Of a stretch of 64,000 nucleotides of DNA, positions 3,589 through 64,000 are shown piece by piece. The translations under genes and the position numbers were made by a program. Position 1 is the stretch's first letter; every line of letters begins with the position of its first letter. The stretch is from the IMG/VR virus record IMGVR_UViG_3300032236_002285, positions 412,237 through 476,236 of that record; one strand, written 5' to 3'. A model generated the notes under the pieces. The model saw nothing but the letters and a program-made list of their open reading frames with translations. It did no database searches and was not told where the DNA came from.

Positions 3589-5319
3589 TTAAACAGCGGG
3601 TCTGTTTTTAGCATCTATAGTTCCTTTCTTAATAATATTAACAGATTTCAAACCATTGCCATCTATATCATCAGAATAATAAACACCATTTCTATCAAAC
3701 CAACCACCTCTAATAATAGGAATTTCATTTGGTTCGAATATGATATCACCTAAAATAGGATCAAGACCTTTAACATCACTATATGAATAATCAGGATTCA
3801 TGTTAGAAATTGATATATCAGTTTGGTAACTTGAGTTATACATATTTAATTTATTTTGAGCATCGGTCATTGCTTGTGTATGATAATCCTCATTCTTTTT
3901 AGATATAATTTGAATATCAACTGAGTGAATATCTTGTATGCTTGAAAGAGCTCTAATTAAATCTAATTTAGGTATTCTATCAATTCTGGTTAAATTCAAA
4001 AAGTAATCAGAAATAGCTTGTAATATTTGAGAATTAACAGAATCATCTAAAGCATCTGAATAAGACATCACATAGACATTCATCACATAATATGATAAGT
4101 CAGGTGATTTAATTCTATACTTCTTAGTTAATTGTAAGTTACCACCCGCCTTCAAATAAGTATCTATCTTTGATATCTCATAAGCATCTAAACTAAAAGC
4201 CGCAATATCAATCGTAAAATAATCAGAATCTGGACTTTTGAACAATTTAATATTTGGTGTTGCCACTATGAAAATTGTTCCTGTTTGCTCATAAGCATTA
4301 ACATGTGAGAAAACACCTAATTTTTTAATCTCATAAGCATATTGTTGAGGCAAACCTAATACGAAGTTATTAGAAGCAATAGGAAGAATGTTTTTAGTAA
4401 ACATCAAATCCTCTTTATCAGCGCCAAAATTAATATCAGTGTAAATATCAACATCAAATACTTTTGTTATATCTAGTGTGTCACCATTACCATCAAATAC
4501 ATCTTCTACAAACTTCCAATCATTTCTAGTTCTTCTGAAGATATTACCATTAGAACCATTAGTTTTTAAGTAGTTAATTTGTATTACAGAACCTATTGGA
4601 GGAATAGCACCGAATCCACTATTACCAAATACAACATCAATACCACCGTTGAATCCAGTTCTAACAACACAAGCGTTTTCATCTGGAATCATCTCCCAAA
4701 TGTGTTTTTTTATTGACCAATAAACACCATTAACTAAAACTTCAACATTAAAATTTTCGACATCTTGATTAGCTGACTCTGAAAAGTTAAAAGTTTGTAA
4801 AGAAGTTCCATCACCTGTTCTAGTATTTTGAACCCACTCACCTTGAATTATTGGTAAGAAAAATTGATAGTTAGGAGTTATTTTATGACTAACTCTTTCA
4901 GTACCTATATTAAGAATATAACTTAAACTATTAGTTATGTTTTTAATTCTGGTTCTATTTATAATAACAACTCTACCACCTGGTATATCAGTTCCTAAAT
5001 CTACATTACTTTTCAATGTCAGCCTTAATGTACCAGTAGCACTAATAGCTCTACCTGGATTATGACCAGCAAAAATAGCAGCATTTCTAATAATTCTTTC
5101 ATTTATTGAGTTATTATCACCAAGATCAAACTGATTAATAGCATTCTTCAAATATAAGAATGACAACTGATGTAGATTTTCTAAAACAGATAAAATCTGA
5201 CCATAAGGTGATGCAGGACTATAAAGGATGTTGCCTTTATTATGCTCGTTTCTAAGGAAAGTTTCTATATCAGCTTTGATATTTGAGTATGTAATCTGTA
5301 TGAAATTATTTAATGCCAT
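3589..5319 (-). CDS. Baseplate wedge subunit, T4 gp6-like / baseplate J-like
   Basis: N-terminal YSNIKADIETFL..SPYGQILSVL..RNAAIFAGHNPGRAISATGTLRLT, central GGIDVVFGNSGFGAIP and YLKTNGSNGN motifs typical of gp6-like wedges. Confidence 0.85.
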   Translation of the reverse strand: MALNNFIQITYSNIKADIETFLRNEHNKGNILYSPASPYGQILSVLENLHQLSFLYLKNAINQFDLGDNNSINERIIRNAAIFAGHNPGRAISATGTLRLTLKSNVDLGTDIPGGRVVIINRTRIKNITNSLSYILNIGTERVSHKITPNYQFFLPIIQGEWVQNTRTGDGTSLQTFNFSESANQDVENFNVEVLVNGVYWSIKKHIWEMIPDENACVVRTGFNGGIDVVFGNSGFGAIPPIGSVIQINYLKTNGSNGNIFRRTRNDWKFVEDVFDGNGDTLDITKVFDVDIYTDINFGADKEDLMFTKNILPIASNNFVLGLPQQYAYEIKKLGVFSHVNAYEQTGTIFIVATPNIKLFKSPDSDYFTIDIAAFSLDAYEISKIDTYLKAGGNLQLTKKYRIKSPDLSYYVMNVYVMSYSDALDDSVNSQILQAISDYFLNLTRIDRIPKLDLIRALSSIQDIHSVDIQIISKKNEDYHTQAMTDAQNKLNMYNSSYQTDISISNMNPDYSYSDVKGLDPILGDIIFEPNEIPIIRGGWFDRNGVYYSDDIDGNGLKSVNIIKKGTIDAKNRPAV

Positions 5320-6495: not shown

Positions 6496-6933
6496 ATGAA
6501 ACACTTAAAATCATATAAGATCTACGAAAGTGATAATGTTTGTACTACTTGTAACGGAACTGGTGAAGTAGATAGAGAGATTAATATGTGGGGTGATATG
6601 GGTAGATATGAGTGTGAGGATTGTAATGGAACTGGTAAACTAAGCACTCAATCATTTACAAAAGATTTAAGATCATTCACAGATGAATCTCAATCAGAAT
6701 TGAAATCATTACTGGATAAGTATGAAATAAAATACGGCGCTGTTTTACCTAAAGTTGAAAGATATTCTGATAATCATGAAGATGTTGAGAAGGTAGAAAT
6801 AGAAGCTCAGTTATACTCAACTTCTACATTAACTAAAGAATTACTTGAAGAAATAAATGAAAAATATGTTGATTATAATATTCATTTTGATACTTACAAT
6901 CACTTATATCTAATGGTTTATAAACTTTACTAA
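6496..6933 (+). CDS. CTS-like leader + DnaJ-type CxxCxGxG zinc finger protein
   Basis: Likely start at ATG 6496 (MKHLKSYKIYES); CTTCNGTG and CEDCNGTG repeats. Confidence 0.7.
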   Translation: MKHLKSYKIYESDNVCTTCNGTGEVDREINMWGDMGRYECEDCNGTGKLSTQSFTKDLRSFTDESQSELKSLLDKYEIKYGAVLPKVERYSDNHEDVEKVEIEAQLYSTSTLTKELLEEINEKYVDYNIHFDTYNHLYLMVYKLY

Positions 6934-7475
6934 TCCATAAAATCATAAATATCATCTGGTAAAAATTCTGGATCAGTTATTTTTAAATCATAGTCTCTAA
7001 AGTCTCCGAAGTCAATATCATCAGCATCTAGTCTTCTTGTAATTGAGTCATTTTTATCTTGTCGTCCTAATAGTCTTGACTCTCTAACCTCTCTATCAAT
7101 ATCAAGATAAACAACAAAGCAACCTTCTCTCATCTCAGGTGTTAAGTTAGTAAACTCACCAGGTGTCATAATAAATACTTGTGACTCATTGAATTCTTGT
7201 AAGGTTATACCATAGTACCATGTTTCTGGTTCTCTACCATCAGGTGTAACATAAAATGTTTGGTAAGCTAAAAATTTATTTTCATTTATAGATTGTGTAA
7301 ACTCATAATCAGATACAAAATTGTAAGTAATACCTTGTTCTTCATTTAGTCTTTGAGGTCTTGTTGTCCATTTAAGACAAGCTTTTAATCCTTTTTCAAC
7401 AAGCTTTCTCATTAAGAAGTCCTTACCTGAACCAGATTTACCTAAAATAATTAGTTTCTCATTTTTAACATTCAT
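6930..7475 (-). CDS. gmk: Guanylate kinase-like protein
   Basis: P-loop GKSGSGKD, TTRPQR..E..G..YNFVS motif, YGIT. Confidence 0.88.
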   Translation of the reverse strand: MNVKNEKLIILGKSGSGKDFLMRKLVEKGLKACLKWTTRPQRLNEEQGITYNFVSDYEFTQSINENKFLAYQTFYVTPDGREPETWYYGITLQEFNESQVFIMTPGEFTNLTPEMREGCFVVYLDIDREVRESRLLGRQDKNDSITRRLDADDIDFGDFRDYDLKITDPEFLPDDIYDFMD

Positions 7476-7568
7476 TATATTGTTAATAAATTTATTAATT
7501 ATAATTTGTAAATATGAAAAAGTTTAAGTATTGAATTTTTAATATATACTAAAAACAAATAATAATAT

Positions 7569-8612
7569 ATGTCAGTTGGTACAAAATATGCTACAGCCTT
7601 TACGAATGGTGTTACAATTCCAGGTTTTACTAATATTGGTAAAGTTGCCATAGATACAAACCCAGGTGTCGGAGATTATACACTCGGTAACTTTGTTGGT
7701 GGTATAAATGGCTCATATGACTACACTTCATATATTATTATATCTGATACAACTACAGCTCTTATTGATAATAGAAGCACTGGTAATCACACGGGTTCGG
7801 CTTTACCTAATCAACCAACATTTTTTGCTTCTAAATTTAAAACTGATGAAAGTTTTTTAAGAATGGTTAATAGACTACCAGCAAGATCAGGTCAAACTGC
7901 TTTTACTGATCCTTTATTAGCTTCTTCCTGGCTTAGGTCAAATGGTTATTGGACTACTTATGTAACACCGGTACTATCATTAGATGCTGGTAACCCAGCA
8001 AGTTACCCAGGAACCGGAAATACATGGACTGATACTATTGGTGGTAAAACATTCAATTTATATAATGGCGTTGGTTACGATCCAAACAATGGTGGTAAGT
8101 TTTATTTTTATGCACCAGCGGGTCAATATGCTGAGTGTAATACAAGTTTACCTGATTTAAATACTTGGTCAGTTGGTGTTTGGCACTATTATACTGGTCA
8201 AAATATTGGTTCTGGTATGTGTATTGTAACTGAAGTTTACCCAGGAGTAAATAATAATATAAACTACTCTTTAGGAGATAACGATACTGGCGGTGATATA
8301 AGTGCAGGATTTTTTGATGGCGCTTGGAGAGTAAGTAATCCTTATAGTTTAACACCTAATAATTGGTATTATATCGTTGGTACCTATGATGGTAGTACAA
8401 TTAGTCTTTATGTTAATGGTAGTCTAGTACAATCAAATAATTATAATGGTTACCCAATATCATCCCAGGGTGGTATAAGATTAATGAGAAGATGGGATAA
8501 TCCTGATTATTGGGATGGTTATTTATCTACGGTTGATATTTATGATCAAGCATTAGATTCATCAAAGATATCATCTATCTTTAATTCAACTAAATCAAGA
8601 TTTGGTTTGTAA
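7569..8612 (+). CDS. LamG/concanavalin-A jelly-roll domain protein (virion/tail-associated)
   Basis: LSLDAGNPASYPGTGNTWTD, NNWYYIVGTYDG..ISLYVNG, IYDQAL motifs. Confidence 0.85.
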   Translation: MSVGTKYATAFTNGVTIPGFTNIGKVAIDTNPGVGDYTLGNFVGGINGSYDYTSYIIISDTTTALIDNRSTGNHTGSALPNQPTFFASKFKTDESFLRMVNRLPARSGQTAFTDPLLASSWLRSNGYWTTYVTPVLSLDAGNPASYPGTGNTWTDTIGGKTFNLYNGVGYDPNNGGKFYFYAPAGQYAECNTSLPDLNTWSVGVWHYYTGQNIGSGMCIVTEVYPGVNNNINYSLGDNDTGGDISAGFFDGAWRVSNPYSLTPNNWYYIVGTYDGSTISLYVNGSLVQSNNYNGYPISSQGGIRLMRRWDNPDYWDGYLSTVDIYDQALDSSKISSIFNSTKSRFGL

Positions 8613-12187: not shown

Positions 12188-15100
12188 ATGGCTTTACCTG
12201 GTTTATTTCCACTTTACCCCGATCCAATACCAATGAAATATCAAGTTTCATTAGGTCTACCGCCTCTTCCGGTAAGTGAAATAACTAAGTCAATTGGTAT
12301 AACTTCATCAAGCTCATTTTTAGTTCCTAATATTGAATATCTTCAAAAGTTTATTGAAGGTGATTTAGGAATTGCTGATAAGGCAGTAAAAGAAACATTA
12401 TATAAAAACTTTAATGACCCTATTGCTCAGAATAATGATAAAGTATTCAAAAGCTATGCTAGTCTAAATCAAATTGACATACCAGATATTAATAAGTATA
12501 AAGTAGATGGTAAAATAAAATTCCCTAAAGAAGATGTAACAGCTCCTAATTTAGATGGCATTGGATTCAAAGCATTTGAGAAAACCATTATGACTTCTAT
12601 CTTTGAAACTCAGAAACCATATCTTGAAGTTGCTAAATTAGTTATTGCTAATGTTGCTAAAATAGAAGACATAACCGCAAGAGTCATGCCTTTATTGGGT
12701 GTTCCTCTTAAAACTAAATCGCTAAAACCAACAGGTAATAGTGGTGCGGGTGATAGACCTAAAGCAATTGGTTATCAAAATGGTGATGAGTTAAAGAAAG
12801 CTCTTTCTCAATTACAAACACTAACTAATCAAGGATCAAAGATAAAAATAGATAAAAATGGTAATGCTACTCAAAGTATAACACCAACCGGAACAGCAAG
12901 CGTTTCGGGTAACGGTGATAATACAAACTGGCAGATACTATCAAGTGTTTATTCAACTGGTAAATTCATACCAGGCATAGACTATCAATATACTTATATT
13001 GATTTACCAAGCCAAACAAAGAACACACCAGAAACAGCTGACTTAAATTTAGGAGATGATGATCCATATAGTGGTTATAAACCAGAGAGAATAATATTGG
13101 GTATATTTAGATCGGATGGAACGCCATTAGATCCTAATGAATATCTAAAGACTATTGGTTCAAATGGCAATAATATAACATATAATGAAACAAATTTCAA
13201 AAGAGCTGATTGGGTATTAAAATCACCGAAGTGGCATTTACCACCATATCTTTCAGATACAAGATCGGCTATTTACTCTTGGCCGGCATTTGGCTCACCA
13301 ACATATAAGTGGAAAGGTCCTTTATTATTAACTCAAGATAGTAAGACGAAACCAGCGGATGGTTGGGAAATAATGAAATATGAAAAAGGAGATAAGAATG
13401 TAATTACCGGAGATGACGCTATCGAAGGTGACCCAATAATAACTGGGTTTGATACTAATCAAATTAATGAGTATAAGTCTTATTTTACCGATACGGTTAA
13501 ATATAAAATGAATCAATCTGATGGTTTAGAACAAACAGAAAAAGATCAATATTCTAATGAAATAATTAGCAAACTAAATATTCAATCACATCTTCAAAAT
13601 GTTTACTTATATGGTCAATCAAAGTCATCTGTTTACAAACAAATTAATAATAAACCGGCTTACCCTGAATCATTAAAAATATCTTTTAAGCCTTTTCAGA
13701 TATATTCAGCATCGGCTTCTCAAGATGTTAATCTTGCTGCTTATAATAAATCAGTGGGTTTACAACCAGGATTTATTTGGATTGATCCAGAATCTGATTA
13801 TGAAACAAAGATAATAAGAGTTGATCCTACAACTAAAATTGCTTTTGAAGAGGGAAAAGGTCAGCCTCAAATTTCATCAACAATTAAATCATTTGTTAAA
13901 AACAAAGCCAGTTTTAGTATATCTAATGGTCAAAACTTTAATATTGATATTCAAAAGAACGGCTTAGTAACGGAATCATTTACAAATGTTAATCAGTATG
14001 TTCTTGAAAATTGGAATTATAATTCAGATACTAATTTACCACCAGAAAATAGATTTGAGAATACTAACTTTTATAACATCTCTATTTGGTCAACAACACC
14101 TACAAAAGACTATGTTAATAAATCAGGAACAATAGAATTAAATCCTGACTCCTACTATCGTGAGTTAGTTAGAGAAAATGATAAATGGCTATATAAATCA
14201 TATATCTATGATAGCAATGGTGATAAATCTTATGTCGTGATATCAGATGGTGATATACTACTTAATGATAATATGAAAACTAGAGTTAGAATTCAAAATG
14301 GTTATATTATAAGATGGTATTATGCTTATAATAGAGTATTTAATGCTACAAACCTACCCGCATTTGGAAAAGGAAGAAACTTAGTATTAAACTACACAAA
14401 CGATTTGGATTCAAATTCTAACTTAATCATAAACACAACAGATACTGATATACCTTTATATCAATTAAAAGTCGAAAATAGTGATTTTCCTTATGGTAAA
14501 ATTATAGACCCATCAAAAATAACTAACGACAACTTAATTAAAGACCAATTATTCTCAAAAGGTAAGTATGGTCATGGTGATGCTGAAAATCCACAAGAGA
14601 TAGAAGTTATACAAAGATATATGCTAACTGATTTAGACACAGAGTCTTATTATATCATAGAGGGAGTTTTAACAGAAAAAAATACACAAACTGACACGGT
14701 ACCTTCAACAGGCGGCGCTGCGTCCGGTGGTGGTTATTATAGACTACCACATGCTTTAGGTGCGACTAAAGTTTTCTTATCTTTATTAGTAGATATCTTT
14801 TCAAAGTTAATACCTCAAATAACTAAGATGATAGCTCTTTTCAAAAATCCAGGAAGTTTTATAATAGACATTATACAAAGAAAGTTAGGTGAAGGTTTTT
14901 CTATTTTTTCTAAACAATCATTTGATACATTTGAAAAGGCAAAATCTATTTCAAATAAGAAAGTTGATAGCACCAATAGAGTATCCGATAAGGTTAATAG
15001 GCTTAAAGATACATTTAAAAACTCACCATTATCTAATGTGGTTTATGTTGATAAAAAAGGTAATTACAAATTTTTACTTGATGGTGTAGCTATGTTACCA

Positions 15101-16483
15101 TTTGAGATGTTTGGTTTAAGTATTCCTTTTGGTGCTGATTTGAACTTTTCTAATTTACCTGATGTGCCTATAAAATTAATAACAGATGTTAAAACAGCAA
15201 AAGCTAAAAATATTCAAGACTTCTTAAAACCTAAGTTAAAAGAATTTAACGGACCAGGTAGTACCGGTGTTGCGCCAACAGGAGCAGGAAAGCTAGCACC
15301 TGGATTAAATATCTCAGATATAAAGTCAATTAAAGATGATCCTATTTATAATACTAATGTAAATAATGGTAAAACCAATCCTAATGATTATCAGATTATT
15401 GATGTTAAATATTCAACTGGTTCTTATATAAATGGTGTGAATTATAATTATATTTATATTAATCAAGATGAAGATAAAATATTAACTGATGCTAATAATT
15501 TAGTAAATACTCCTAATGAAGCGGTCGATTTACCTAAGGCTCAAAAAACTTTACAGGATTTGAATGATGCTCAAAAGAAAGACCCTACAAATGAGGCAAT
15601 AAAAGATATGATTAATAAACTTAAAAATAAGTTAGCAAATCTTTCTGATAATACTCAACCAATTATTAAAATGTTATTAGGCTTTGTTACAATACCTGTA
15701 AAAATAATTGGTGGTATAATAAGTTGGTTAATGGACTTTTTCAAAAGTCTAACAAATCCACTAACACTACCTGCTAAAATAGCAGAATTATTATCTTTTA
15801 GTTGGCTCATGAAGTTTTTCACACCTATTGGTATGATGGAACTTATAGGATTTAAGTTTGAACCAGCTAAACTAGCAGAGTGGCTTGCCTTGGTTAAGGT
15901 ACCAAGTGTAAAACCACCTAATATATCACCTAAAATACCAGATGGTTTTGATTTACCAAGTGCTCATTATTACAAGGATGCAACACCAAAAGGTAGATTT
16001 TTAATACCAGATGATTTTGATATAGCTGACTTAAATATGGTAATTGCTGCTCCGTTTATTCCTAAATTACCAACCTATACAGCTAGACAATTCAGAGAGA
16101 ATCCAACAAGACCTATTAAGTTAATATTGCCTTTTCTTTGTTTCTTTGAAAAAATAATAAATGGTATAATTGATTTTATTTGGTCAACATTAGGTATAGA
16201 AGCTTTAATACCAGCACCTCATATAAAATTATGTAGTAATTCAGTAAATCCTAGTATAAGTGATGCTGTTAAGATAGCTGATGACTTGAAGAAAACGGGA
16301 ACTGAACCGGTTGCTACAGGTGGTACCTTTAGTAATGGTAGTAGCACTAATATACCAACAGATGCTGGGTTTTTATATGATATAACTCTTGATAATGGGA
16401 CCGTAGTAAAAGGTTTAAACTATGAAGAAATGCAAAAGTATATTAAAGACCATGAGAATATTGGTTATGATTTTAAATTCTAA
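12188..16483 (+). CDS. Large (1431 aa) hypothetical virion-type protein with internal repeat
   Basis: Long ORF; YSTGx[FY]IxG[IV][DN]YxYxYI motif occurs twice; amphipathic helical segments in C-terminal half. Confidence 0.7.
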   Translation: MALPGLFPLYPDPIPMKYQVSLGLPPLPVSEITKSIGITSSSSFLVPNIEYLQKFIEGDLGIADKAVKETLYKNFNDPIAQNNDKVFKSYASLNQIDIPDINKYKVDGKIKFPKEDVTAPNLDGIGFKAFEKTIMTSIFETQKPYLEVAKLVIANVAKIEDITARVMPLLGVPLKTKSLKPTGNSGAGDRPKAIGYQNGDELKKALSQLQTLTNQGSKIKIDKNGNATQSITPTGTASVSGNGDNTNWQILSSVYSTGKFIPGIDYQYTYIDLPSQTKNTPETADLNLGDDDPYSGYKPERIILGIFRSDGTPLDPNEYLKTIGSNGNNITYNETNFKRADWVLKSPKWHLPPYLSDTRSAIYSWPAFGSPTYKWKGPLLLTQDSKTKPADGWEIMKYEKGDKNVITGDDAIEGDPIITGFDTNQINEYKSYFTDTVKYKMNQSDGLEQTEKDQYSNEIISKLNIQSHLQNVYLYGQSKSSVYKQINNKPAYPESLKISFKPFQIYSASASQDVNLAAYNKSVGLQPGFIWIDPESDYETKIIRVDPTTKIAFEEGKGQPQISSTIKSFVKNKASFSISNGQNFNIDIQKNGLVTESFTNVNQYVLENWNYNSDTNLPPENRFENTNFYNISIWSTTPTKDYVNKSGTIELNPDSYYRELVRENDKWLYKSYIYDSNGDKSYVVISDGDILLNDNMKTRVRIQNGYIIRWYYAYNRVFNATNLPAFGKGRNLVLNYTNDLDSNSNLIINTTDTDIPLYQLKVENSDFPYGKIIDPSKITNDNLIKDQLFSKGKYGHGDAENPQEIEVIQRYMLTDLDTESYYIIEGVLTEKNTQTDTVPSTGGAASGGGYYRLPHALGATKVFLSLLVDIFSKLIPQITKMIALFKNPGSFIIDIIQRKLGEGFSIFSKQSFDTFEKAKSISNKKVDSTNRVSDKVNRLKDTFKNSPLSNVVYVDKKGNYKFLLDGVAMLPFEMFGLSIPFGADLNFSNLPDVPIKLITDVKTAKAKNIQDFLKPKLKEFNGPGSTGVAPTGAGKLAPGLNISDIKSIKDDPIYNTNVNNGKTNPNDYQIIDVKYSTGSYINGVNYNYIYINQDEDKILTDANNLVNTPNEAVDLPKAQKTLQDLNDAQKKDPTNEAIKDMINKLKNKLANLSDNTQPIIKMLLGFVTIPVKIIGGIISWLMDFFKSLTNPLTLPAKIAELLSFSWLMKFFTPIGMMELIGFKFEPAKLAEWLALVKVPSVKPPNISPKIPDGFDLPSAHYYKDATPKGRFLIPDDFDIADLNMVIAAPFIPKLPTYTARQFRENPTRPIKLILPFLCFFEKIINGIIDFIWSTLGIEALIPAPHIKLCSNSVNPSISDAVKIADDLKKTGTEPVATGGTFSNGSSTNIPTDAGFLYDITLDNGTVVKGLNYEEMQKYIKDHENIGYDFKF

Positions 16484-28517: not shown

Positions 28518-29276
28518 TTACTTCTTTTTCTTATCAGTGCCAGGTACTTGTAAGATTTCTCTTTGATAGTATTCATCGAAACCATCCATTAAAGTTGTGA
28601 TTGAAGATGTTTTATCACTAATGATAATTTCATCAATAAATCCAAAGTCTAATGCTTCTTGTGAATTTAACCACTTGTCTCTACGAGCACTTTCCAAAAC
28701 TTCTTCAAATGATTTACCAGAGTTTTCAGCCAACATCTTAAACAAGATGTAGTTGTACTTTTCAGACTCCATTTGAGAGATACGATTATCTTGAACGTGT
28801 CCTTGAGCACCAGAACTAACTTGGTGAATCATTACTTTAGAGAAGTTCAAAGAAGATCGTTTACCTTTTGTACCAGATGATAGTAAGATAGACCCCATTG
28901 ATGCTGCCATACCAGTATTAATAGTTGCTACATCAGATTTGATATATCTCATTACGTCTACCATAGATAAACCAGATTTAACTGAGCCACCTGGTGAGTC
29001 AACGTGCATTGTGATGTCGCTGTTGTTTAAATTATCCAAGAACATTAACTGAGCTTGAACAATAGTTGACATATTGTCGTTAACAACACCGGCTACCCAC
29101 AAAATACGATCTCTCATTAAACGAGAGAAGATATCCATTTGAGTTACACGCATTTCTCTTTCTTCAAGAATGTATGGTGTCATACTATTCTCCAAGTTTT
29201 TATCGAAATAGTGTAGGTTAAGTGACGAGATACCTTCACTCAAGGCGTACTTTTGAAATTCTTTTCCGTAATTCAT
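28518..29276 (-). CDS. clpP: ATP-dependent Clp protease proteolytic subunit
   Basis: MDIFSRLMRDRI, SPGGSV, GMAASMG (catalytic Ser), MIHQ (His), RDKWL. Confidence 0.95.
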   Translation of the reverse strand: MNYGKEFQKYALSEGISSLNLHYFDKNLENSMTPYILEEREMRVTQMDIFSRLMRDRILWVAGVVNDNMSTIVQAQLMFLDNLNNSDITMHVDSPGGSVKSGLSMVDVMRYIKSDVATINTGMAASMGSILLSSGTKGKRSSLNFSKVMIHQVSSGAQGHVQDNRISQMESEKYNYILFKMLAENSGKSFEEVLESARRDKWLNSQEALDFGFIDEIIISDKTSSITTLMDGFDEYYQREILQVPGTDKKKK

Positions 29277-32035: not shown

Positions 32036-32308
32036 ATGAATAAGACAGATTTAGTAAACTCGATAGCTAAACAAACAGGTCTATCAAAGTCAAAGTCTAA
32101 CGAGGTTATCAACGCTTTCGTTTCAGCTGTATCTGAATCACTTTCAAAAGGTGAGAAAGTTACACTTGTAGGCTTCGGTACATTTACCACTTCCGAAAGA
32201 GAAGCTCGTAAAGGTCGTAACCCTAAGACTGGTGAAGTTATTAACATCTCGGCTAAAACCGTTGCTCGCTTCAAAGCCGGCTCTGAACTTAGCAAGAGTG
32301 TTAATTAA
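32036..32308 (+). CDS. hup: HU family DNA-binding protein
   Basis: MNKTDLV..IA, GEKVTLVGFGTF, RKGRNPKTGEVI..ARFKAGSEL. Confidence 0.96.
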   Translation: MNKTDLVNSIAKQTGLSKSKSNEVINAFVSAVSESLSKGEKVTLVGFGTFTTSEREARKGRNPKTGEVINISAKTVARFKAGSELSKSVN

Positions 32309-32523: not shown

Positions 32524-33039
32524 CTAATTCAACATATAAGTGAAACCTTTTGAAATAGTATCACCATATTCTTTTTTCATTTCGTGATCTCTGTATTTAA
32601 TACCAACAATCAAATCAGAGCAACCATCTAATAATTCAAGTGTTTCAGCAATTATCAAGCTTGGATCAAAGTCTTCATCAGTTTCTAAAACATAGTTAAA
32701 GAAATTACCCTTTTGATAATCCTCTGCTGAAAAATAAGTTGTATCATTGAATTTATAATCATCTTCATACTCCTCAAATTCAAAATCATCGTCTGATTCC
32801 CAAACTACTTCACCCGATTCATCTTTAACAATGATTTGAATATTCTCACCACCGGGATAAATACCCATCACGATATCTTCACTATCTAAAAAATCAATAC
32901 CTAAAACCTCATTGATTTGTTCGTGTTCCATTAAATCATCTTCAACACCACCTTCTTGTAGTTGTTCGTATTGTTCTTCATTTAATTTATGAATAAAAGC
33001 TTCAGCACCTTTACCATTAACTTCAATTGTATATTTCAT
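32524..33039 (-). CDS. Acidic hypothetical protein
   Basis: 171 aa, very D/E-rich. Confidence 0.7.
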   Translation of the reverse strand: MKYTIEVNGKGAEAFIHKLNEEQYEQLQEGGVEDDLMEHEQINEVLGIDFLDSEDIVMGIYPGGENIQIIVKDESGEVVWESDDDFEFEEYEDDYKFNDTTYFSAEDYQKGNFFNYVLETDEDFDPSLIIAETLELLDGCSDLIVGIKYRDHEMKKEYGDTISKGFTYMLN

Positions 33040-33040
33040 A

Positions 33041-33352
33041 TTATCTTTTTACATACATTATACAATCAACATTACCTAAAGTTTTTATGTTGATTTTTTT
33101 ATACTCAAGACCTTCATATTCATCTATTAAAGGCATCATTTCTTCTGGTATATGAACAATTGCTCCTAAAATAGGTGATTTTTTATTCTCACTTGGAATA
33201 GCAACATTATAGTAAATACCACTCATTTTAACTTTTATAATATCCCAACCATTGATGAAGTCTAAATCAGGCTCAACATAAAACTCTTGACCAAACTCTC
33301 TAAGTTGAACTTCTTTTTCACAAAGTGTACCATATGAGAATAACTTAATCAT
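33041..33352 (-). CDS. Gamma-glutamylcyclotransferase (GGCT/AIG2)-like protein
   Basis: LFSYGTL N-terminus, LIDEYEG..YKK motif. Confidence 0.75.
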   Translation of the reverse strand: MIKLFSYGTLCEKEVQLREFGQEFYVEPDLDFINGWDIIKVKMSGIYYNVAIPSENKKSPILGAIVHIPEEMMPLIDEYEGLEYKKINIKTLGNVDCIMYVKR

Positions 33353-33746
33353 TGATTATGCTTTTAATAGTTATATCTCTTTTAAGTTTTTTGAATGTTT
33401 CTCTATCACAATCTTTCCAATTCATTTTGAAATGAAATGCAAAAGCTTGTTCGAATCCAAACTCACCAACACCAACACTATCTTCTAATAATTTTCTTTC
33501 TTTTACAGGTAGTGATATCCAATCTAAACAAAATTCTGGTGTTGCTTTTTTAGCAAAATCTTGAATCATTCTATCCCACTCAAAATCTAATGAGTCTTGC
33601 TCATCAAATTTATGACCACAAAAACAACATTGATATAATTGTTCATCATCAAGTATGATAACTAAGTCAGTTGCCTTGCCATCTGGATTACAAGTTTTAC
33701 AATCACATTTATTTATCTTCTCACATTTTGGACAAAGCAAAGCCAT
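33345..33746 (-). CDS. Zn-binding hypothetical protein, C-tag
   Basis: CPKC..CDCKTC..CCFCG; ends RDITIKSIIND. Confidence 0.65.
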   Translation of the reverse strand: MALLCPKCEKINKCDCKTCNPDGKATDLVIILDDEQLYQCCFCGHKFDEQDSLDFEWDRMIQDFAKKATPEFCLDWISLPVKERKLLEDSVGVGEFGFEQAFAFHFKMNWKDCDRETFKKLKRDITIKSIIND

Positions 33747-33949
33747 TATAAATTATTTTTATAATTATTAAGAAAATTCTTTTCATGTATTGATAAACTA
33801 TCATATCCTTCTTTAGATATTCTATCTAAAATAGAGTTTAGTTTATCTTCTCTACCTTTACGCATAGAATTGAATTCATCATCACTGATAACTCTTTTTC
33901 TAACTTGCTTAGGTTTAGACTTAAATAAATTTTTGAACCAATTAAACAT
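33746..33949 (-). CDS. DUF6576-like small protein
   Basis: REDKLNSILDRISKEGYDSLSIHEKNFL resembles the helical domain at the C-terminus of Bacteroidota rhomboids; probable start ATG 33949. Confidence 0.65.
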   Translation of the reverse strand: MFNWFKNLFKSKPKQVRKRVISDDEFNSMRKGREDKLNSILDRISKEGYDSLSIHEKNFLNNYKNNL

Positions 33950-33951
33950 AA

Positions 33952-34914
33952 TTAACAACCATATACGCTTTCGTGAGGTGAAAACCTAAGTGTAGGTTTT
34001 TCATCTAATACGTTAGCAATTTTTAACTCTCTATTTATATTTTTAATATTTTCAATTTCTTTCCAACCTCTATCCTCTAACTTAGCTTTTCTATGTTGTG
34101 CTCTTTTTTGAGAATACATTTTAGCAAACATATTAACTGAGAAAACTTTGCTCTGACAATGAACAATAGCATTAGGAAAATCCTCATAAAGTGTTTCACC
34201 ATCATAAGAAACACCACAACAACTAAAGTCAACATTAGCAATTAAATCTGAAAATCCTTGACGATAAACTTGTTCATCTTTACCTTTAGAACCTATTGAT
34301 GGTCTAATTAACTGAACAATCTTTTTACCTTTAATCCAAGTGTGTGGCTCATTAATAACGTGAATATCAGAATAAATTTCTTGAAGATCTTTACCATTCA
34401 ACATTTCCATATACTGATAATCATTTTGTTCTAAAACAGATTCAATATACCTAAGTGCTTTAGAGCCACAAAGAATATCAACATCATTGATTGGTTGTTC
34501 TGCTAGAATATCTCTGATGGCTCCACCAAAAATTCTAACTAAATTAAACTTACTTTTGAATAATTCATCTGAATCAAATTCTAAATATTCATTTAATGAT
34601 TGTCTAATCTTATCTTCTTGAGTTACTGCTATGTGCCTCAGTTTTTCTTCTCTCATAAATTGTAGGTAAATATCCTTCTTTATACTTAAAGTCTCGTATT
34701 TGTTTATAACATCATCCGGATTTTTATAATTAGTAAGAGTAACTGCAAAACTAACACTAATAGTATCTTCAATTTCAAATACTCTTGTTAATCTAATCTT
34801 TAGTTTATATTCATTAAGATTAGGTTTAAGAAGGGTGAATTTTTTATCTAACCAATTATCATTAGTTACCACATTGTAAACTATTTTCTCAACTAACTTG
34901 TCGTAGATTTCCAT
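33952..34914 (-). CDS. C-tag module fused to class II (CCA-adding/poly(A) polymerase head) nucleotidyltransferase
   Basis: IFGGAIRDIL..INDVDIL and DFSCCG motifs; REEKLRHIA at domain junction, RELKIANVL near end. Confidence 0.8.
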   Translation of the reverse strand: MEIYDKLVEKIVYNVVTNDNWLDKKFTLLKPNLNEYKLKIRLTRVFEIEDTISVSFAVTLTNYKNPDDVINKYETLSIKKDIYLQFMREEKLRHIAVTQEDKIRQSLNEYLEFDSDELFKSKFNLVRIFGGAIRDILAEQPINDVDILCGSKALRYIESVLEQNDYQYMEMLNGKDLQEIYSDIHVINEPHTWIKGKKIVQLIRPSIGSKGKDEQVYRQGFSDLIANVDFSCCGVSYDGETLYEDFPNAIVHCQSKVFSVNMFAKMYSQKRAQHRKAKLEDRGWKEIENIKNINRELKIANVLDEKPTLRFSPHESVYGC

Positions 34915-34930
34915 AATTTACAAATATAAA

Positions 34931-34958
34931 AAAACCCTTTGATAATTCAAAGGGTTTT
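34931..34958 (-). terminator. Terminator after tyrosinase
   Basis: aaaaccctttga-taat-tcaaagggtttt. Confidence 0.75.
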
Positions 34959-34977: not shown

Positions 34978-36435
34978 TTATCTACCAGTGACGGTAACAT
35001 TATCAATAATCATATCAGATGTAACTTGATTATGCTTATAGATTGTTATATTATATTCACCAGAAGTAACTGATTCTTTTGATAACTCAAAATAGAATTT
35101 AGTATAAGGTCTGCCATTTGAATTCAATGGAGTGCAACATCCTTTTCTACAAGATTTACCTTGCATCTTATCATCAAAGCCAAAGAAGTTCATAAATCCA
35201 ACAAAGTATTTACTACCAGGATAATAGATTTCACTAGCTGGTATGTTTAAGTAAACTTCATAAATACCTCTTGGTACTTTATCAAAAGACACAGATACTT
35301 CCATATTCATTTTACGGAATGAATTATTATCAGATGTTAATAAACCATCAACTCTAAGACTTGTAAAACCTGAGGCAACCTTAACATTTACATTCTTATT
35401 AGCAATAACTTTAATAGGTGTTGCTTGAACTAATGTGTTTTGAGATTTAGGTTGAACCTTTGTATCATCAAAATCATAATCCATATTGTATATGATTTTA
35501 ATAACCGAATCCATTGTATATTCTACCTTTTTACCATTCTCATCAAAGAATACATAGGGCCATTCAACAGACTTCAATTCTTCTAAAGTAATCATTTTAC
35601 CATTTTCAGAATTAGTCCATTGTTGCCAGATTCTATCAATGTTAGAGTGATGTAACCAAAAAATTGGATCAAAACCAGCAGTTGGTACCCAACCCATTAA
35701 TCCTGTATTAGTAACAGAGTTTGTGATAGGATTGTTAAATTTAAGTAACCCTGTTGTATCATTACCAGCACCAATATAATCATGCATTGCTCCGTGAGGT
35801 GCCGCATTGATATTCATACAAAAAGTATAATAATCTGTATAAGACATTAACTTAGTCATATCTAATGCTCTTTCGATTTCACCAGAGATAGGGTAACCAT
35901 TGTTTAAACTATCATATCTACAAGATTCATATAAAGCTGACTTTGAATCTCTAAACATAACAGGCATCATTTTGTCAGAATCGTTTAAGTTTGTATAACC
36001 CCAATAAGGTAAAGCAAAGTCTTTCTTTCCTGATAATTTTCTTACAATCTTTTCAAAGTGCCAGATATAAAGTCTGTGCCAAACTAAGAAGTGTATTTTT
36101 TCTTTACCAGAAGGTGAGTGAGTACAATTGTCCCAAGCTTCTTTTAAATCAGCTACGGTGCTATAAGATTCACATAAAGGATTCTTACCAATTGAATCTG
36201 GAATCCAGTGCATTGCACCTTGATAGTACCAACTCATTGGATCAGTACATCCTTTCTCTCTCATAATAGTCAAAGCCTTATTCATAGCCTCAATATCTGA
36301 CTGAGCTTCTGTCGAGTTAGCATTCTTTCTAACAAAACGACCTATCTTATTATGTGCGAAGTGAGTATAAACAACACCAGTCATGATAGATAACACCAAT
36401 ATAATGATTAGTGATGAAATTGTTTTTCTATTCAT
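34978..36435 (-). CDS. Tyrosinase / polyphenol oxidase (type-3 copper) with N-terminal signal or TM anchor
   Basis: CuA AMHW..CTH..HFLVWHR, PYW; CuB PHGAMHDYIG..DPIFWLHHSNIDRIW. Confidence 0.92.
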   Translation of the reverse strand: MNRKTISSLIIILVLSIMTGVVYTHFAHNKIGRFVRKNANSTEAQSDIEAMNKALTIMREKGCTDPMSWYYQGAMHWIPDSIGKNPLCESYSTVADLKEAWDNCTHSPSGKEKIHFLVWHRLYIWHFEKIVRKLSGKKDFALPYWGYTNLNDSDKMMPVMFRDSKSALYESCRYDSLNNGYPISGEIERALDMTKLMSYTDYYTFCMNINAAPHGAMHDYIGAGNDTTGLLKFNNPITNSVTNTGLMGWVPTAGFDPIFWLHHSNIDRIWQQWTNSENGKMITLEELKSVEWPYVFFDENGKKVEYTMDSVIKIIYNMDYDFDDTKVQPKSQNTLVQATPIKVIANKNVNVKVASGFTSLRVDGLLTSDNNSFRKMNMEVSVSFDKVPRGIYEVYLNIPASEIYYPGSKYFVGFMNFFGFDDKMQGKSCRKGCCTPLNSNGRPYTKFYFELSKESVTSGEYNITIYKHNQVTSDMIIDNVTVTGR

Positions 36436-36556
36436 TTTTATTTTATTTTTATTTCTTATATAAAATCAAGGATTAAATGTTTAATTATTAATATATACAG
36501 AAAATTAAACCGTTAAAATTGGTTTTTACCAAAATAAATTTAATATATAATCTACT

Positions 36557-38225: not shown

Positions 38226-39857
38226 ATGAAACATTTAAAACACATACAAGTATTTGAAGCCTTTGAATCTAAGATTCTTAGCAAAACATTAGGTTATATT
38301 AAAGAACCAAATGATAGAGAAAAGTTTTTTGACCAAATCAAAAGACTATGTAATTCTATAGATTATCCTTATTCAGAAATGTCTGATGACTTCTTTGAAT
38401 ATTTACCATTTAAAAAAGCAATCAACAAAGCAGCAATGACTGGTGATGAACCTTGTGAAGCAACTTCAAAAAGTGAATTCCCGGAATATGCGGTAGATGG
38501 AGCTAAGTGTGAAGGTGGTAAACTTAAAAGAAAATGGGGAGCTAGGACAAGAGAGGTAGTTTGTCCAGTTTGTAATGGTACTGGGGTTAAACCAAAAAAA
38601 TCTGAAGTAAAATTAGTTAAATTCTGGTTTACATCAGAAGGTAAATATGTTACTACAACAATTGTTGATGGTGTGATAAGAAGTGGTAAATCTGGTTCTA
38701 AAATATCAACTAGATTATCAGATTATATAGTATCTTCAAATGTTTCGGATATAAACACACTAACCGGTGGTGAAATTGTTAGTGTTAATATAAGAGGTGA
38801 TCAAGTTATTGCCTACATAGTCAAAGAGTATGGTAGATATTTTGCTATACAAAATAAAGTCTCAGGTAGCACACCAAGTTCTTCAAGTTGGAGGTCATAT
38901 GGTAAGTATTCATGGGCTTTAGGTCGTGGTGAATACTCTGATATGAAACTTCTTACAAAAAAACCAAAAAGTAAAGAAGAGGAAGAAGTAGATCCATATA
39001 CTTGGAATGTTGGTGTTAATTTCTCATATGGTCAAGTATCAGTAAATAGTTCAATAGATGTTCAAAATGTAATTAAAGATGCTCACTTTGCTATTGTATT
39101 TGATTATGGTAAATTGAAAAAGTCTGAATTTAAAAATAGAGAAGAAACTAAACAAAAAAGAGAAGAGGCTAAAGAAGGCTCTAAATTAGATCCTAATCAA
39201 TCAGATGTAGAAATAAGAAAAAGAAATATTGAAAGATATGTTAATTTACTTTCTCAAAAGTTAGACATATCGACTGATATAGGAAATTGTAATAGACTAG
39301 TAGTTAGAGCTTTAGGTCATAAAGCTGCTTTATATATTGTTTATGGAACAAACATCTATTCTTATTTAACAAACCTTATCGACTCTTATATGAAGTTTAT
39401 GAAGGCTGATGACAATAATACTAAAAAATCATATGCTGAAGATATATCAGAAAAAACAAATGATATGTTTAAGAGTGGTATGAAAAGAGCTGATAGAGCC
39501 AACGATATTGTTAAAGATGTTAGATCCAAACTTAAAGCAAATAATGCAGATGAAAAATATATTCAATTGTTAGATTTAACTCAAAAACTAAGTGATGCTA
39601 TCTATGATAATATTAAAAACTATCAAATAGATAGTATTGAAGATTTAGAAGTTGTTGCTCAAAAGATTAGCTCAATCAGAAACATTCTTAAATCAGATAG
39701 ATATGGACTAAGTAGATATTTCAATTATTATATTTCTTATGTAGTGGATAATAGACCAGAGAGGGCATATGATTATTTATCAGATCCTTATTATGTAAAT
39801 ATTGATGCTGCCTTAGAAAACTTACCAAGAATAATAACAATTATCTCTAAACTATAA
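38226..39857 (+). CDS. CTS-like leader protein with DnaJ-type zinc finger
   Basis: MKHLKHIQVFEAFES; CEGG..CPVCNGTG. Confidence 0.7.
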   Translation: MKHLKHIQVFEAFESKILSKTLGYIKEPNDREKFFDQIKRLCNSIDYPYSEMSDDFFEYLPFKKAINKAAMTGDEPCEATSKSEFPEYAVDGAKCEGGKLKRKWGARTREVVCPVCNGTGVKPKKSEVKLVKFWFTSEGKYVTTTIVDGVIRSGKSGSKISTRLSDYIVSSNVSDINTLTGGEIVSVNIRGDQVIAYIVKEYGRYFAIQNKVSGSTPSSSSWRSYGKYSWALGRGEYSDMKLLTKKPKSKEEEEVDPYTWNVGVNFSYGQVSVNSSIDVQNVIKDAHFAIVFDYGKLKKSEFKNREETKQKREEAKEGSKLDPNQSDVEIRKRNIERYVNLLSQKLDISTDIGNCNRLVVRALGHKAALYIVYGTNIYSYLTNLIDSYMKFMKADDNNTKKSYAEDISEKTNDMFKSGMKRADRANDIVKDVRSKLKANNADEKYIQLLDLTQKLSDAIYDNIKNYQIDSIEDLEVVAQKISSIRNILKSDRYGLSRYFNYYISYVVDNRPERAYDYLSDPYYVNIDAALENLPRIITIISKL

Positions 39858-63373: not shown

Positions 63374-64000
63374 TTAATACTTTATGAATATATTCGATAC
63401 ATTATCCACTATTAAATAATAAGTGCCTGGTACAAACCAACTAACATCTATTGAACCACAACCCATCGGCATATATTTAGAATACCAGATTCTACCATCT
63501 ATTGACATAATACTTACTTTACTATATTTAGGTAAGGTAACTACTATCTTACTATTAGTAGGGTTTGGATAAAAACTGAATTTAGGTAATTGATTATCTA
63601 CAATAACCAATGGACTACATTCTGTAATAGTATCATATAAAGCATCAAATGCTGTTACTGGCATATTATCATGTGACCAAGATTTCCTTATAGTTGGTGG
63701 CATTAAATCATCATAACACCAACAAATAGAATCACTGGTTGAAACGGTGACATAAGTGGTTAATGTGGCAAGTGTTATTGGTGGGAAAGGTAGTAACACT
63801 TTATATTTAAGTGTGGTATCACCATAAATAGTAAATGTAGTATCTAATAATAAAGTCCTGGCAGCATCACTGGTGAATACAGCCATTTCTACATTTGATT
63901 TACAATTACTAGGGTTGATAATAGTTTCATTAATATAGTAAGCTTGTGAGTAAGCATTTATTGATATTAGTAAACTAAGTAAGGTTAATAGTTTTTTCAT
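63374..64000 (-). CDS. Secreted protein with Sec signal peptide and T9SS type-A C-terminal sorting domain
   Basis: MKKLLTLLSLLISINAYSQ signal; FYPNPT..I...VSIMSIDGR..IDVS..PGTYYLIV..FIK CTD. Confidence 0.88.
   Translation of the reverse strand: MKKLLTLLSLLISINAYSQAYYINETIINPSNCKSNVEMAVFTSDAARTLLLDTTFTIYGDTTLKYKVLLPFPPITLATLTTYVTVSTSDSICWCYDDLMPPTIRKSWSHDNMPVTAFDALYDTITECSPLVIVDNQLPKFSFYPNPTNSKIVVTLPKYSKVSIMSIDGRIWYSKYMPMGCGSIDVSWFVPGTYYLIVDNVSNIFIKY

Follow-up and report, generated by a model that had tools for sequence, protein, structure and literature searches.

The window analyzed here is the final 64 kb (64,000 nucleotides, positions 412,237 to 476,236) of the 476,236-bp IMG/VR record IMGVR_UViG_3300032236_002285 (G000, C1:412237-476236). 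Its minus strand carries a complete open reading frame (ORF) for a predicted pre-pro polyphenol oxidase (PPO), a type-3 copper protein of the tyrosinase family. An initial annotation, made from the nucleotide letters, described the gene as an intact, phage-encoded and exported tyrosinase with all six copper-binding histidines, a C-x-H motif that could form the thioether of plant and fungal PPOs, an N-terminal signal or anchor and a C-terminal beta domain. It also held that type-3 copper oxidases are rarely reported in phages. The features of the locus are collected in Table 1.

Table 1. Features of the tyrosinase gene and of the adjoining locus (positions of the window)
Feature	Position	Strand	Basis or remark
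Complete ORF, pre-pro polyphenol oxidase (type-3 copper protein), 485 aa	34978..36435	-	ATG start, no internal stops
N-terminal signal-anchor, residues 1-32 (MNRK + 19 hydrophobic)	36340..36435	-	hydropathy, modelled helix 3-26
Catalytic four-helix-bundle core, residues 33-330	35446..36339	-	predicted fold
CuA site: H76, C104-T-H106 (36118-36126), H120 in FLVWHR	36076..36210	-	invariant columns, coordinates confirmed by translation
CuB site: H214-G215-x-x-H218, H262-H263 in DPIFWLHHSNIDRIW, V250 at HB3-13	35647..35796	-	invariant columns, coordinates confirmed by translation
Flexible core-lid linker, residues 331-341, candidate processing site	35413..35445	-	pLDDT ~62 at 331-340, before strand 342-352
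C-terminal beta-sandwich lid, residues 342-485	34981..35412	-	modelled strands 342-484; latent PPO/HcTyr1 alignments reach 484/485
F417-F418, candidate active-site placeholder	35182..35187	-	invariant in 57 sequences, end of strand 411-416
C429-R-K-G-C433-C434, Cys-rich flexible loop, candidate copper-loading loop	35134..35151	-	marker of phage-bearing clade
Intrinsic terminator: 12-bp stem, 4-nt loop, T-run	34921..34958	-	starts 20 nt past stop codon
AT-rich divergent intergenic spacer, 121 bp, promoter presumed	36436..36556	.	sequence
Divergent pair of conserved megaphage ORFans, 555 aa + 543 aa	36557-38224 and 38226-39857	+	locus markers
Downstream nucleotidyltransferase	33952..34914	-	phrog_1614 7.9e-6; PolyA_pol head 0.0016

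Family and copper site

The uninterrupted reading frame of 485 codons matched the Pfam family PF00264 (Tyrosinase) with 101.3 bits (cut-off 22.6; E value 1.3e-28), and a six-frame search of the whole record recovered the same match. Among solved structures, the protein sequence matched mollusc haemocyanin units, plant PPOs and bacterial tyrosinases. Invariant positions were taken from an alignment of the window protein with its phage and bacterial relatives (57 sequences). Seven histidines are invariant in this alignment (H76, H106, H120, H214, H218, H262 and H263), together with C63, C88, C104, G215, V250, F417 and F418. The columns assign H76/H106/H120 to the CuA triad and H214/H218/H263 to the CuB triad. 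H262 is the usual seventh histidine and not a copper ligand; such a non-ligand histidine has also been described in the Verrucomicrobium spinosum enzyme (PMC10526336). H115 was considered as the third CuA ligand and dropped, since it is Asn in several members of the alignment, whereas H120 of the W-H-R motif is invariant. The window protein has the CuA pattern of the family (a helix-2 His, a loop His and the His of F-x-x-W-H-R), its CuB pattern (H-x3-H and the His of DP-x-F-x-x-H-H-x-x-x-D-R) and its four-helix-bundle core. The intact frame, the six copper-binding histidines and the type-3 copper family of the initial annotation were therefore borne out, the family by agreement between the PF00264 profile and the predicted fold.

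The C-x-H motif (C104-T105-H106) is genuine and invariant in the alignment. The same topology occurs in mollusc haemocyanins. It is also found in fungal tyrosinases, in the V. spinosum tyrosinase (vsTyr) and in HcTyr1 of Hahella (PMC10526336, PMC11609597), and the Cys-His thioether itself, which only certain subgroups of the family have, has been observed in vsTyr (PMC10526336). Judging from the position of the cysteine, a C104-H106 thioether may form in the window protein. The presence of the motif and its fungal topology agree with what had been annotated; the likeness to plant PPOs does not hold, as the plant thioether has another link topology (PMC10526336).

A small gate residue above CuA is present. 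This is the invariant V250, which stands 13 residues before the third CuB histidine (position HB3-13), and which by position count we take to correspond to V218 of Bacillus megaterium tyrosinase. Plant enzymes, for example sweet-potato catechol oxidase, carry a bulky Phe at the gate.

Predicted fold, lid and export signal

An AlphaFold model built on the 57-sequence alignment had a mean predicted local distance difference test score (pLDDT) of 89.4 and a predicted template modeling score of 0.89. In the model, a helix at the N-terminus (residues 3-26) precedes a core of helices that reaches about residue 330. A linker of low confidence (331-341) then leads to a beta-sandwich (342-484) that includes a disordered loop at 421-440. 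In the structure comparison, the best match was Hahella HcTyr1 (8B74) with a score of 30.2, 366 residues aligned and a root mean square deviation of 3.8 A, followed by tomato PPO (29.0), apple PPO (28.4), Ralstonia TYR (27.9) and aurone synthase (about 26.7). The alignments with 8B74, 6HQI, 6ELS, 7XIO and 4Z1x extend to residue 484/485 of the window protein, so that the annotated C-terminal beta domain superposes as a lid on those of the latent PPOs. The model indicates that the window protein is a two-domain latent PPO fold.

The order of elements in the lid is strand 411-416, F417-F418, a low-confidence Cys loop (pLDDT below 50 at 430-433) and strand 443-451. F417 is 68 residues away from the C-terminus, and the placeholder F397 of HcTyr1 is 69 residues away. 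In HcTyr1, the lid plugs the active site with Phe397, and loss of the lid increases the activity about 10-fold (PMC11609597). In the fungal enzyme abPPO4, the plug Phe454 lies behind a lid strand, and the long disordered loop that comes next bears a CXXC "copper grappler"; a CXXC loop after the placeholder is also present in the Aspergillus oryzae tyrosinase MelB (aoTyr) and has been implicated in copper insertion (PMC4157443). Like abPPO4 and aoTyr, the window protein has a Phe where a lid strand ends, here a candidate placeholder, and then a disordered loop with a Cys motif, and its C-x-H motif has the topology of the thioether in fungal pro-tyrosinases. By analogy with these enzymes, the Cys loop is a candidate copper-loading loop. 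The motif C-x3-C-C was found in the lid loop of 114 of the 115 full-length top matches. A His-rich loop takes its position in the bacterial homologues and in P0105, a basal row of the tree described below.

Residues 6-24 form the only strongly hydrophobic segment of the protein (Kyte-Doolittle 19-residue mean 2.26). It is preceded by basic N-R-K and has neither a twin-Arg motif nor a lipobox Cys. The sequence H-F-A-H-N behind it is a poor signal-peptidase site. A mature start R-[YF]-V-R-K-N is conserved and reads R33-F-V-R-K-N in the window protein. Every homologue aligned bears a signal peptide, a lipobox or an anchor-like segment at the same N-terminal position. Lipoprotein signals mark the Bacteroidota homologues, and ordinary signal peptidase I signal peptides are seen in some homologues from Flavobacterium and Nitrosomonas. 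The phage homologues have either a lipobox or, in the sub-clade of the window protein, an anchor-like segment without Cys. Many of the phage versions are lipoproteins that carry acidic residues behind the lipid Cys, a lipoprotein export signal that could route a protein to the Bacteroidota surface. The single hydrophobic N-terminal segment and the export signals at the matching position in homologues agree with the exported protein of the initial annotation. The protein is predicted to leave the cytoplasm unfolded through Sec, and it most likely stays anchored on the outer side of the inner membrane. Because the chain would be exported unfolded, copper would have to be inserted after export, which would be a plausible job for the Cys loop.

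Phage genome carrying the gene

The record encodes a T4-like large terminase and a Gp23-type capsid protein. The capsid protein shares 69% identity with its counterparts in LR756502 (642 kb) and LR745206 (635 kb), and 52-54% with those encoded by a 636-kb and a 735-kb genome. The baseplate wedge protein of the window is 70% identical to the wedges of LR756502 and LR745206. These genomes are curated huge phages of the Mahaphage type from Al-Shayeb et al. In that study, the genomes above 634 kb all fell within the Mahaphage clade, with Bacteroidetes as predicted hosts (PMC7162821). Farther matches of the capsid and wedge proteins were phages of Tenacibaculum, Flavobacterium, Chryseobacterium and Prevotella (Lak).

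A Shine-Dalgarno-like 4-mer precedes 8 of the 610 ORFs of the record (1.3%), compared with 5.9% at random positions, and the leaders are 51% A. This is translation initiation in the style of Bacteroidota. The last ORF of the window (63374-64000, minus strand) matched Por_Secre_tail, a sorting domain of the type IX secretion system (T9SS), with an E value of 1.5e-5, just below the Pfam cut-off. Its product would be a phage-encoded cargo of this Bacteroidota-specific secretion system. The nearest cellular homologues of the tyrosinase also belong to Bacteroidota. From these genomic signs, the host of the phage is most probably a member of Bacteroidota.

IMG/VR classifies the record as a "provirus", and its CheckV completeness is 97%. 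The nearest complete relatives of the 476-kb record have lengths of 634-642 kb. The GC content is flat at about 0.30 across the 476 kb, and the coding density is 93% in the standard code. No head-to-tail or terminal repeat was found in the record, and no tRNA was found in a scan of the window. Since genes near both record ends are common to other viral contigs, the "provirus" class looks doubtful, and perhaps the completeness estimate is also unreliable.

The "provirus" class, the terminal position of the window in the record, the missing terminal repeat, the chromosomal homologues in Flavobacterium cerinum and Mucilaginibacter, and the T9SS sorting domain on the last ORF would all fit a locus of host DNA, either a bacterial flank or part of a chimeric assembly. 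Much stands against this. Besides the flat GC content and the viral genes at both record ends, the left and right neighbors of the tyrosinase gene are orthologous to genes of LR745206 and of further viral contigs. L003, an independent 88-kb contig from a different run, keeps this gene order over the 21-kb stretch compared, with 35 shared genes. Over the junction of the tyrosinase and 555-aa genes, a contig found in a second sample shows 99.6% identity. The bacterial tyrosinase loci have in common with the record, apart from the tyrosinase, only chaperone or other unrelated large genes, and the lid loop of the window protein is of the Cys type that marks the phage-bearing clade rather than of the His-rich bacterial type. 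Host contamination, which the initial annotation named as a danger to its claim, was looked for and not seen. The terminase, capsid and baseplate genes, the phage orthologues on both flanks, the syntenic contig and the uniform GC content place the gene inside a genuine phage genome.

The tyrosinase locus and its relatives

The tyrosinase gene heads a long leftward gene block, but its terminator separates it from the next gene. The terminator scan gave 3 sites against 0.5 expected, and the hairpin behind the tyrosinase gene has a fold of -15.4 kcal/mol (z = -3.5). Hairpins also lie behind the tyrosinase in four of five other phage loci, with a homologous sequence in L003 and different sequences in L012, L036 and L037; no terminator hairpin was found behind the tyrosinase of L004. 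The transcription signals of the gene are therefore a terminator that is present and recurrent, while no promoter was assigned in the 121-bp spacer. By eye, the spacer has no perfect Bacteroidota -7 motif (TAnnTTTG).

On the other side of the spacer, the proteins of the divergent pair are 62.5% (555 aa) and 42.5% (543 aa) identical to those of LR745206, and the pair is also found in LR756502. Neither protein had a Pfam or PHROG match. The 543-aa protein has a zinc-ribbon-like motif (CPVCNGTG) and a distant paralogue at positions 214143-215789 of the record. In LR745206, the nucleotidyltransferase gene (L045 5552-6562) is about 300 bp from a 564-aa gene (6866-8560), and no tyrosinase lies between them. 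The tyrosinase of L003 is 90% identical to the window protein. In a further IMG/VR record of 281 kb (G001), a 59%-identical tyrosinase adjoins the same divergent pair (54% and 43% identical). Amid conserved flanks, the gene is thus absent from LR745206 and present in G001 and L003 at the same site. A recent insertion at this site was considered and rejected, because G001 is farther from the window than LR745206 by the 555-aa protein (54% vs 62.5%) and yet has the gene. As the more distant G001 bears the gene, its loss in the LR745206 line is more parsimonious than two insertions. The gene at this site is probably ancestral and was lost in that line.

The ratio of nonsynonymous to synonymous substitution rates between the window and L003 tyrosinases was 0.17, and that of the neighboring gene was 0.135. 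The tyrosinase gene is under purifying selection.

Distribution and descent

A word-indexed search recovered 1,530 relatives, and the best 120 clusters were all at least 52% identical. The loci examined were 13 from IMG/VR (contigs up to 281 kb) and 16 from GTDB species genomes. The metagenome contigs that bear members of the family reach 320-346 kb. The contexts of L004, L036 and L037 are phage-like, with dense ORFans, ThyA, dNMP kinase, GIY-YIG, HNH, SAM synthetase and ArdC-N. Each viral locus has 1-34 further genes in common with the record. We also considered that the tyrosinase-bearing records are unrelated lineages; this was dropped in view of 2-14 shared genes per locus and the synteny of G001. 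A comparison of the capsid protein and Terminase_6N of the record with five further IMG/VR records that carry a tyrosinase gave a single weak match for the capsid and none for the terminase. Those five records are probably fragments or distant relatives.

A quick maximum-likelihood tree of 107 rows was calculated, which is not reliably rooted, takes its bacterial rows from the word-indexed search and leaves out L020. The window protein falls in an 88-row clade (SH-aLRT 93), which also contains 11 more rows from contigs that are viral or phage-like but no row from a GTDB genome. Two further members, P0071 and P0081, are likewise in phage-like contexts. Next to this clade are a Bacteroidota group of five rows (Mucilaginibacter, F. 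cerinum, Telluribacter and Emticicia), another small viral clade and P0105, while other Bacteroidota, Burkholderiales, Acidobacteriota and Nitrosomonas lie farther out. The Cys-loop marker agrees with the clade of the tree. The phylogeny against Bacteroidota tyrosinases, which the initial annotation had proposed, therefore gave a phage-bearing clade free of bacterial-genome rows, with Bacteroidota as the nearest cellular branch. The label "viral" needs one change on the tree, and the phage sequences may have a single origin, with which the tree is compatible. The tyrosinase family was detected at E values of at most 1e-20 in 4 of 401 evenly sampled Bacteroidota species genomes, approximately 1%.

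The sequence or its close relatives occur in freshwater and lake-water metagenome runs belonging to 13 studies. Short contigs in three metatranscriptome libraries are 89-97% identical to parts of the ORF, which is compatible with transcription of relatives.

No tyrosinase was detected by tblastn in 50,697 INPHARED phage records, including the related huge phages, and a PHROGs scan assigned the window protein to no family. A fold search of BFVD returned weak partial matches only (TM-score at most 0.19), none of them a named copper oxidase or a type-3 copper fold. Literature searches on tyrosinases and PF00264 proteins of phages, jumbo phages and other viruses turned up nothing pertinent in the searchable library, which is not proof of absence. 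The rarity of such enzymes in phage reports, as stated in the initial annotation, is in line with these results. What is new here is the carrier and the lineage, that is, a Cys-loop clade in large freshwater phages; the enzyme chemistry itself is textbook knowledge.

Comparison with known type-3 copper proteins

HcTyr1 of Hahella sp. CCB MM4 differs from the window protein in being a cellular gammaproteobacterial enzyme, and the two are 24% identical over the aligned residues. The latent plant PPOs (aurone synthase 4Z11/4Z14, apple MdPPO1 6ELS and tomato 6HQI) are eukaryotic, plastid-targeted proteins without a Cys loop of this type. The pre-pro-tyrosinase vsTyr (8BBQ) has a twin-arginine translocation (Tat) signal and is exported folded (PMC10526336), whereas the window protein has a Sec-type anchor without a twin Arg. 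The Streptomyces type depends on a separate caddie chaperone and on Tat export; the window protein has the lid fused instead, and a Pfam scan of the neighboring ORFs gave no match to a tyrosinase-chaperone family. The window protein is of the lid-bearing, caddie-independent type, like HcTyr1, vsTyr and the plant and fungal pro-enzymes.

The chromosomal homologues of Bacteroidota (F. cerinum, Mucilaginibacter, Emticicia and Telluribacter) are 47-50% identical over the full length. They have the same ligands, the same spacing of 13 residues between the second and third CuA histidines (HA2 and HA3), G215, V250, the F-F motif and an exported N-terminus. They differ in that they are lipoproteins with a His-rich lid loop, not C-x3-C-C. 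In F. cerinum, PriA, NadC and DapA genes surround the homologue, which is thus chromosomal. In Mucilaginibacter sp. OK098 (L023:7805-9730), a gene of the MbnB/TglH/ChrH family (4e-107) and a DUF2063 gene are located directly upstream of the tyrosinase homologue. Such a pair is typical of copper-binding modified-peptide systems, and it hints at a link of the cellular homologues to periplasmic copper handling.

Mollusc haemocyanins are oxygen carriers with seven or eight units in giant multimers. Their high whole-sequence scores sum many repeats, and their structural match to the window protein is weaker than that of the true oxidases.

Proposed function and alternative explanations

We believe, with a probability of approximately 0.7, that the gene encodes a functional pre-pro PPO and is a self-contained accessory gene of a Mahaphage-group megaphage from fresh water that most probably infects Bacteroidota. 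In the mechanism that we propose, the N-terminal segment would guide the unfolded chain through Sec and tether it at the periplasmic face of the inner membrane; many versions in sister phages would be lipoproteins in place of this anchor. Copper would be loaded after export, aided by the Cys loop beside the plug, a role that has been proposed for the CXXC loop in pro-tyrosinases of fungi. F417/F418 of the beta-sandwich would shut the active site until the linker at 331-341 is cut or the lid shifts. The opened enzyme, together with O2, would then turn o-diphenols, and possibly monophenols, into quinones at the envelope. The benefit is the weakest step and pure inference: phenolics may be detoxified, or polymerized to a melanin-like coat that shields the infected cell.

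Several observations weigh against this reading. At HB1+1, the position that follows the first CuB histidine, the phage and bacterial members have an invariant Gly (G215) and not Asn. An Asn at this place has reportedly been proposed as the controller of monophenolase activity. Neither this rule nor that of the small gate residue at HB3-13 is absolute in the tyrosinase family, so G215 lowers the likelihood of monophenolase activity without excluding it. Judged from these residues, monophenolase competence is uncertain, and the name "tyrosinase" given earlier holds for the type-3 copper family, while the strict, monophenolase sense is not established. The HA2-HA3 spacing of 13 residues is also unusual, the usual value being 8, as in HcTyr1 (His78 and His87). 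The apo crystal of HcTyr1, the closest solved relative, has no Cys-His thioether (PMC11609597). In the lid, F417/F418 are read as a plug from their invariance and from position counting, and the Cys motif is C-x3-C-C and not CXXC, so simple periplasmic disulfides are possible. The tyrosinase was absent from five deposited Mahaphage-type huge phage genomes in the tblastn search; the gene is thus dispensable. In a sigma-70 promoter scan, matches were no commoner than in shuffled sequences. The contigs of the RNA libraries also span neighboring genes and may be DNA carry-over.

Other explanations were considered. The leading idea of the initial annotation was that melanin made from tyrosine or 3,4-dihydroxyphenylalanine (DOPA) shields infected cells or virions from ultraviolet light and oxidants. 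Tyrosinases are best known for light-protective melanin (PMC11609597). The lake-water habitat and the small Val at the gate, as at V218 of the B. megaterium enzyme, would suit this role. However, Gly instead of Asn at HB1+1 speaks against efficient hydroxylation of tyrosine, free tyrosine is scarce outside the cytoplasm, where the enzyme is predicted to be, and the family scans found no pathway partner nearby. We therefore consider the melanin shield doubtful.

Quinones may instead cross-link envelope proteins or receptors and thereby exclude superinfecting phages or harden the cell. The predicted envelope location agrees with this, as do the many phage lipoprotein versions with acidic residues after the lipid Cys, which may be placed on the surface. 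The gene stands as a unit by itself and ends in its own terminator, as many accessory genes of phages do, and huge phages encode membrane and surface proteins that may change host susceptibility (PMC7162821). On the other hand, a latent lid suits a regulated rather than a constitutive enzyme, and no defense or exclusion family was matched in the scans. Cross-linking is an unlikely main role, and as a means of superinfection exclusion it is less likely than the handling of phenolics or a protective melanin-like polymer.

It is very unlikely that the protein is not an oxidase but a binder of copper or oxygen, such as a periplasmic copper buffer or a haemocyanin-like protein. This would accord with the mollusc haemocyanin units as the best sequence matches in the PDB, with a permanently encoded lid, with a Cys-rich (phage) or His-rich (bacterial) loop that could hold extra metal, and with the MbnB-like/DUF2063 genes that adjoin the Mucilaginibacter homologue. 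The haemocyanin scores are inflated by many repeated units, however; the closest structures are the active enzymes HcTyr1, plant PPOs and Ralstonia TYR, and two copper ions per 55-kDa protein make a poor buffer. Host DNA, largely refuted by the genome evidence given above, is barely credible.

The preferred reading is a functional envelope PPO that would handle environmental phenolics or form a protective melanin-like polymer. Virion tanning is the least likely of the roles suggested for it, because the protein carries an export signal and its gene is about 30 kb from the nearest recognizable structural gene, the baseplate wedge (3589-5319). A bolder view would be that freshwater Bacteroidota megaphages have long kept an envelope PPO lineage of their own, with a Cys loop that the bacterial homologues compared do not show, and that quinone tanning or melanization remodels the host surface as armor or as a superinfection barrier, a role undescribed for any phage; phages would then be the main reservoir of the subfamily at this similarity. 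We put this view forward tentatively and are inclined to doubt it.

Type-3 copper oxidases serve melanin formation and phenol turnover, and they were absent from all the phage reference sets searched. The gene is not a one-off, as the contexts examined are large phage-like freshwater contigs of up to 346 kb. If the enzyme is active, megaphage infection would give lake bacteria an extra phenol-oxidizing capacity. This would matter for the response of infected cells to light, oxidants and humic or phenolic compounds, and possibly for the turnover of phenols in fresh water. A compact, self-contained pro-enzyme, exported through Sec and equipped with a putative copper-loading loop, would also be a convenient model for copper acquisition outside the cytoplasm. 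A conserved phage-borne phenol oxidase of the envelope is unexpected and easily testable.

Neighboring genes in the window

The L003 orthologue of the nucleotidyltransferase downstream of the tyrosinase gene is 94% identical and has a weak precomputed match to Gad2, an anti-Gabija protein family. On this match, the nucleotidyltransferase may be an anti-defense gene. A small gene at 33041-33352 (minus strand) resembles gamma-glutamyl cyclotransferase (GGACT/AIG2, 8e-8); this gene and three neighboring small ORFs (32524-33958) had no tblastn match in the syntenic stretch of LR745206.

Farther along the leftward block, a 90-aa ORF at 32036-32308 lies on the opposite (plus) strand and is 77% identical to LR745206. 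Its L003 orthologue matches the HU/IHF family Bac_DNA_binding, which points to a phage histone-like protein. The gene at 28518-29276 (minus strand) encodes a ClpP-like protease, which shares 68% identity with genes of two viral loci, L016 and L019. Its L003 orthologue is 99% identical and matches PF00574, and the ORF next to it in L003 matches the Ribonuclease_P family. On the plus strand, approximately 7 kb from the baseplate wedge gene, an ORF of 1,431 aa (12188-16483) had no PHROG match; it may encode a structural or tail-fiber protein.

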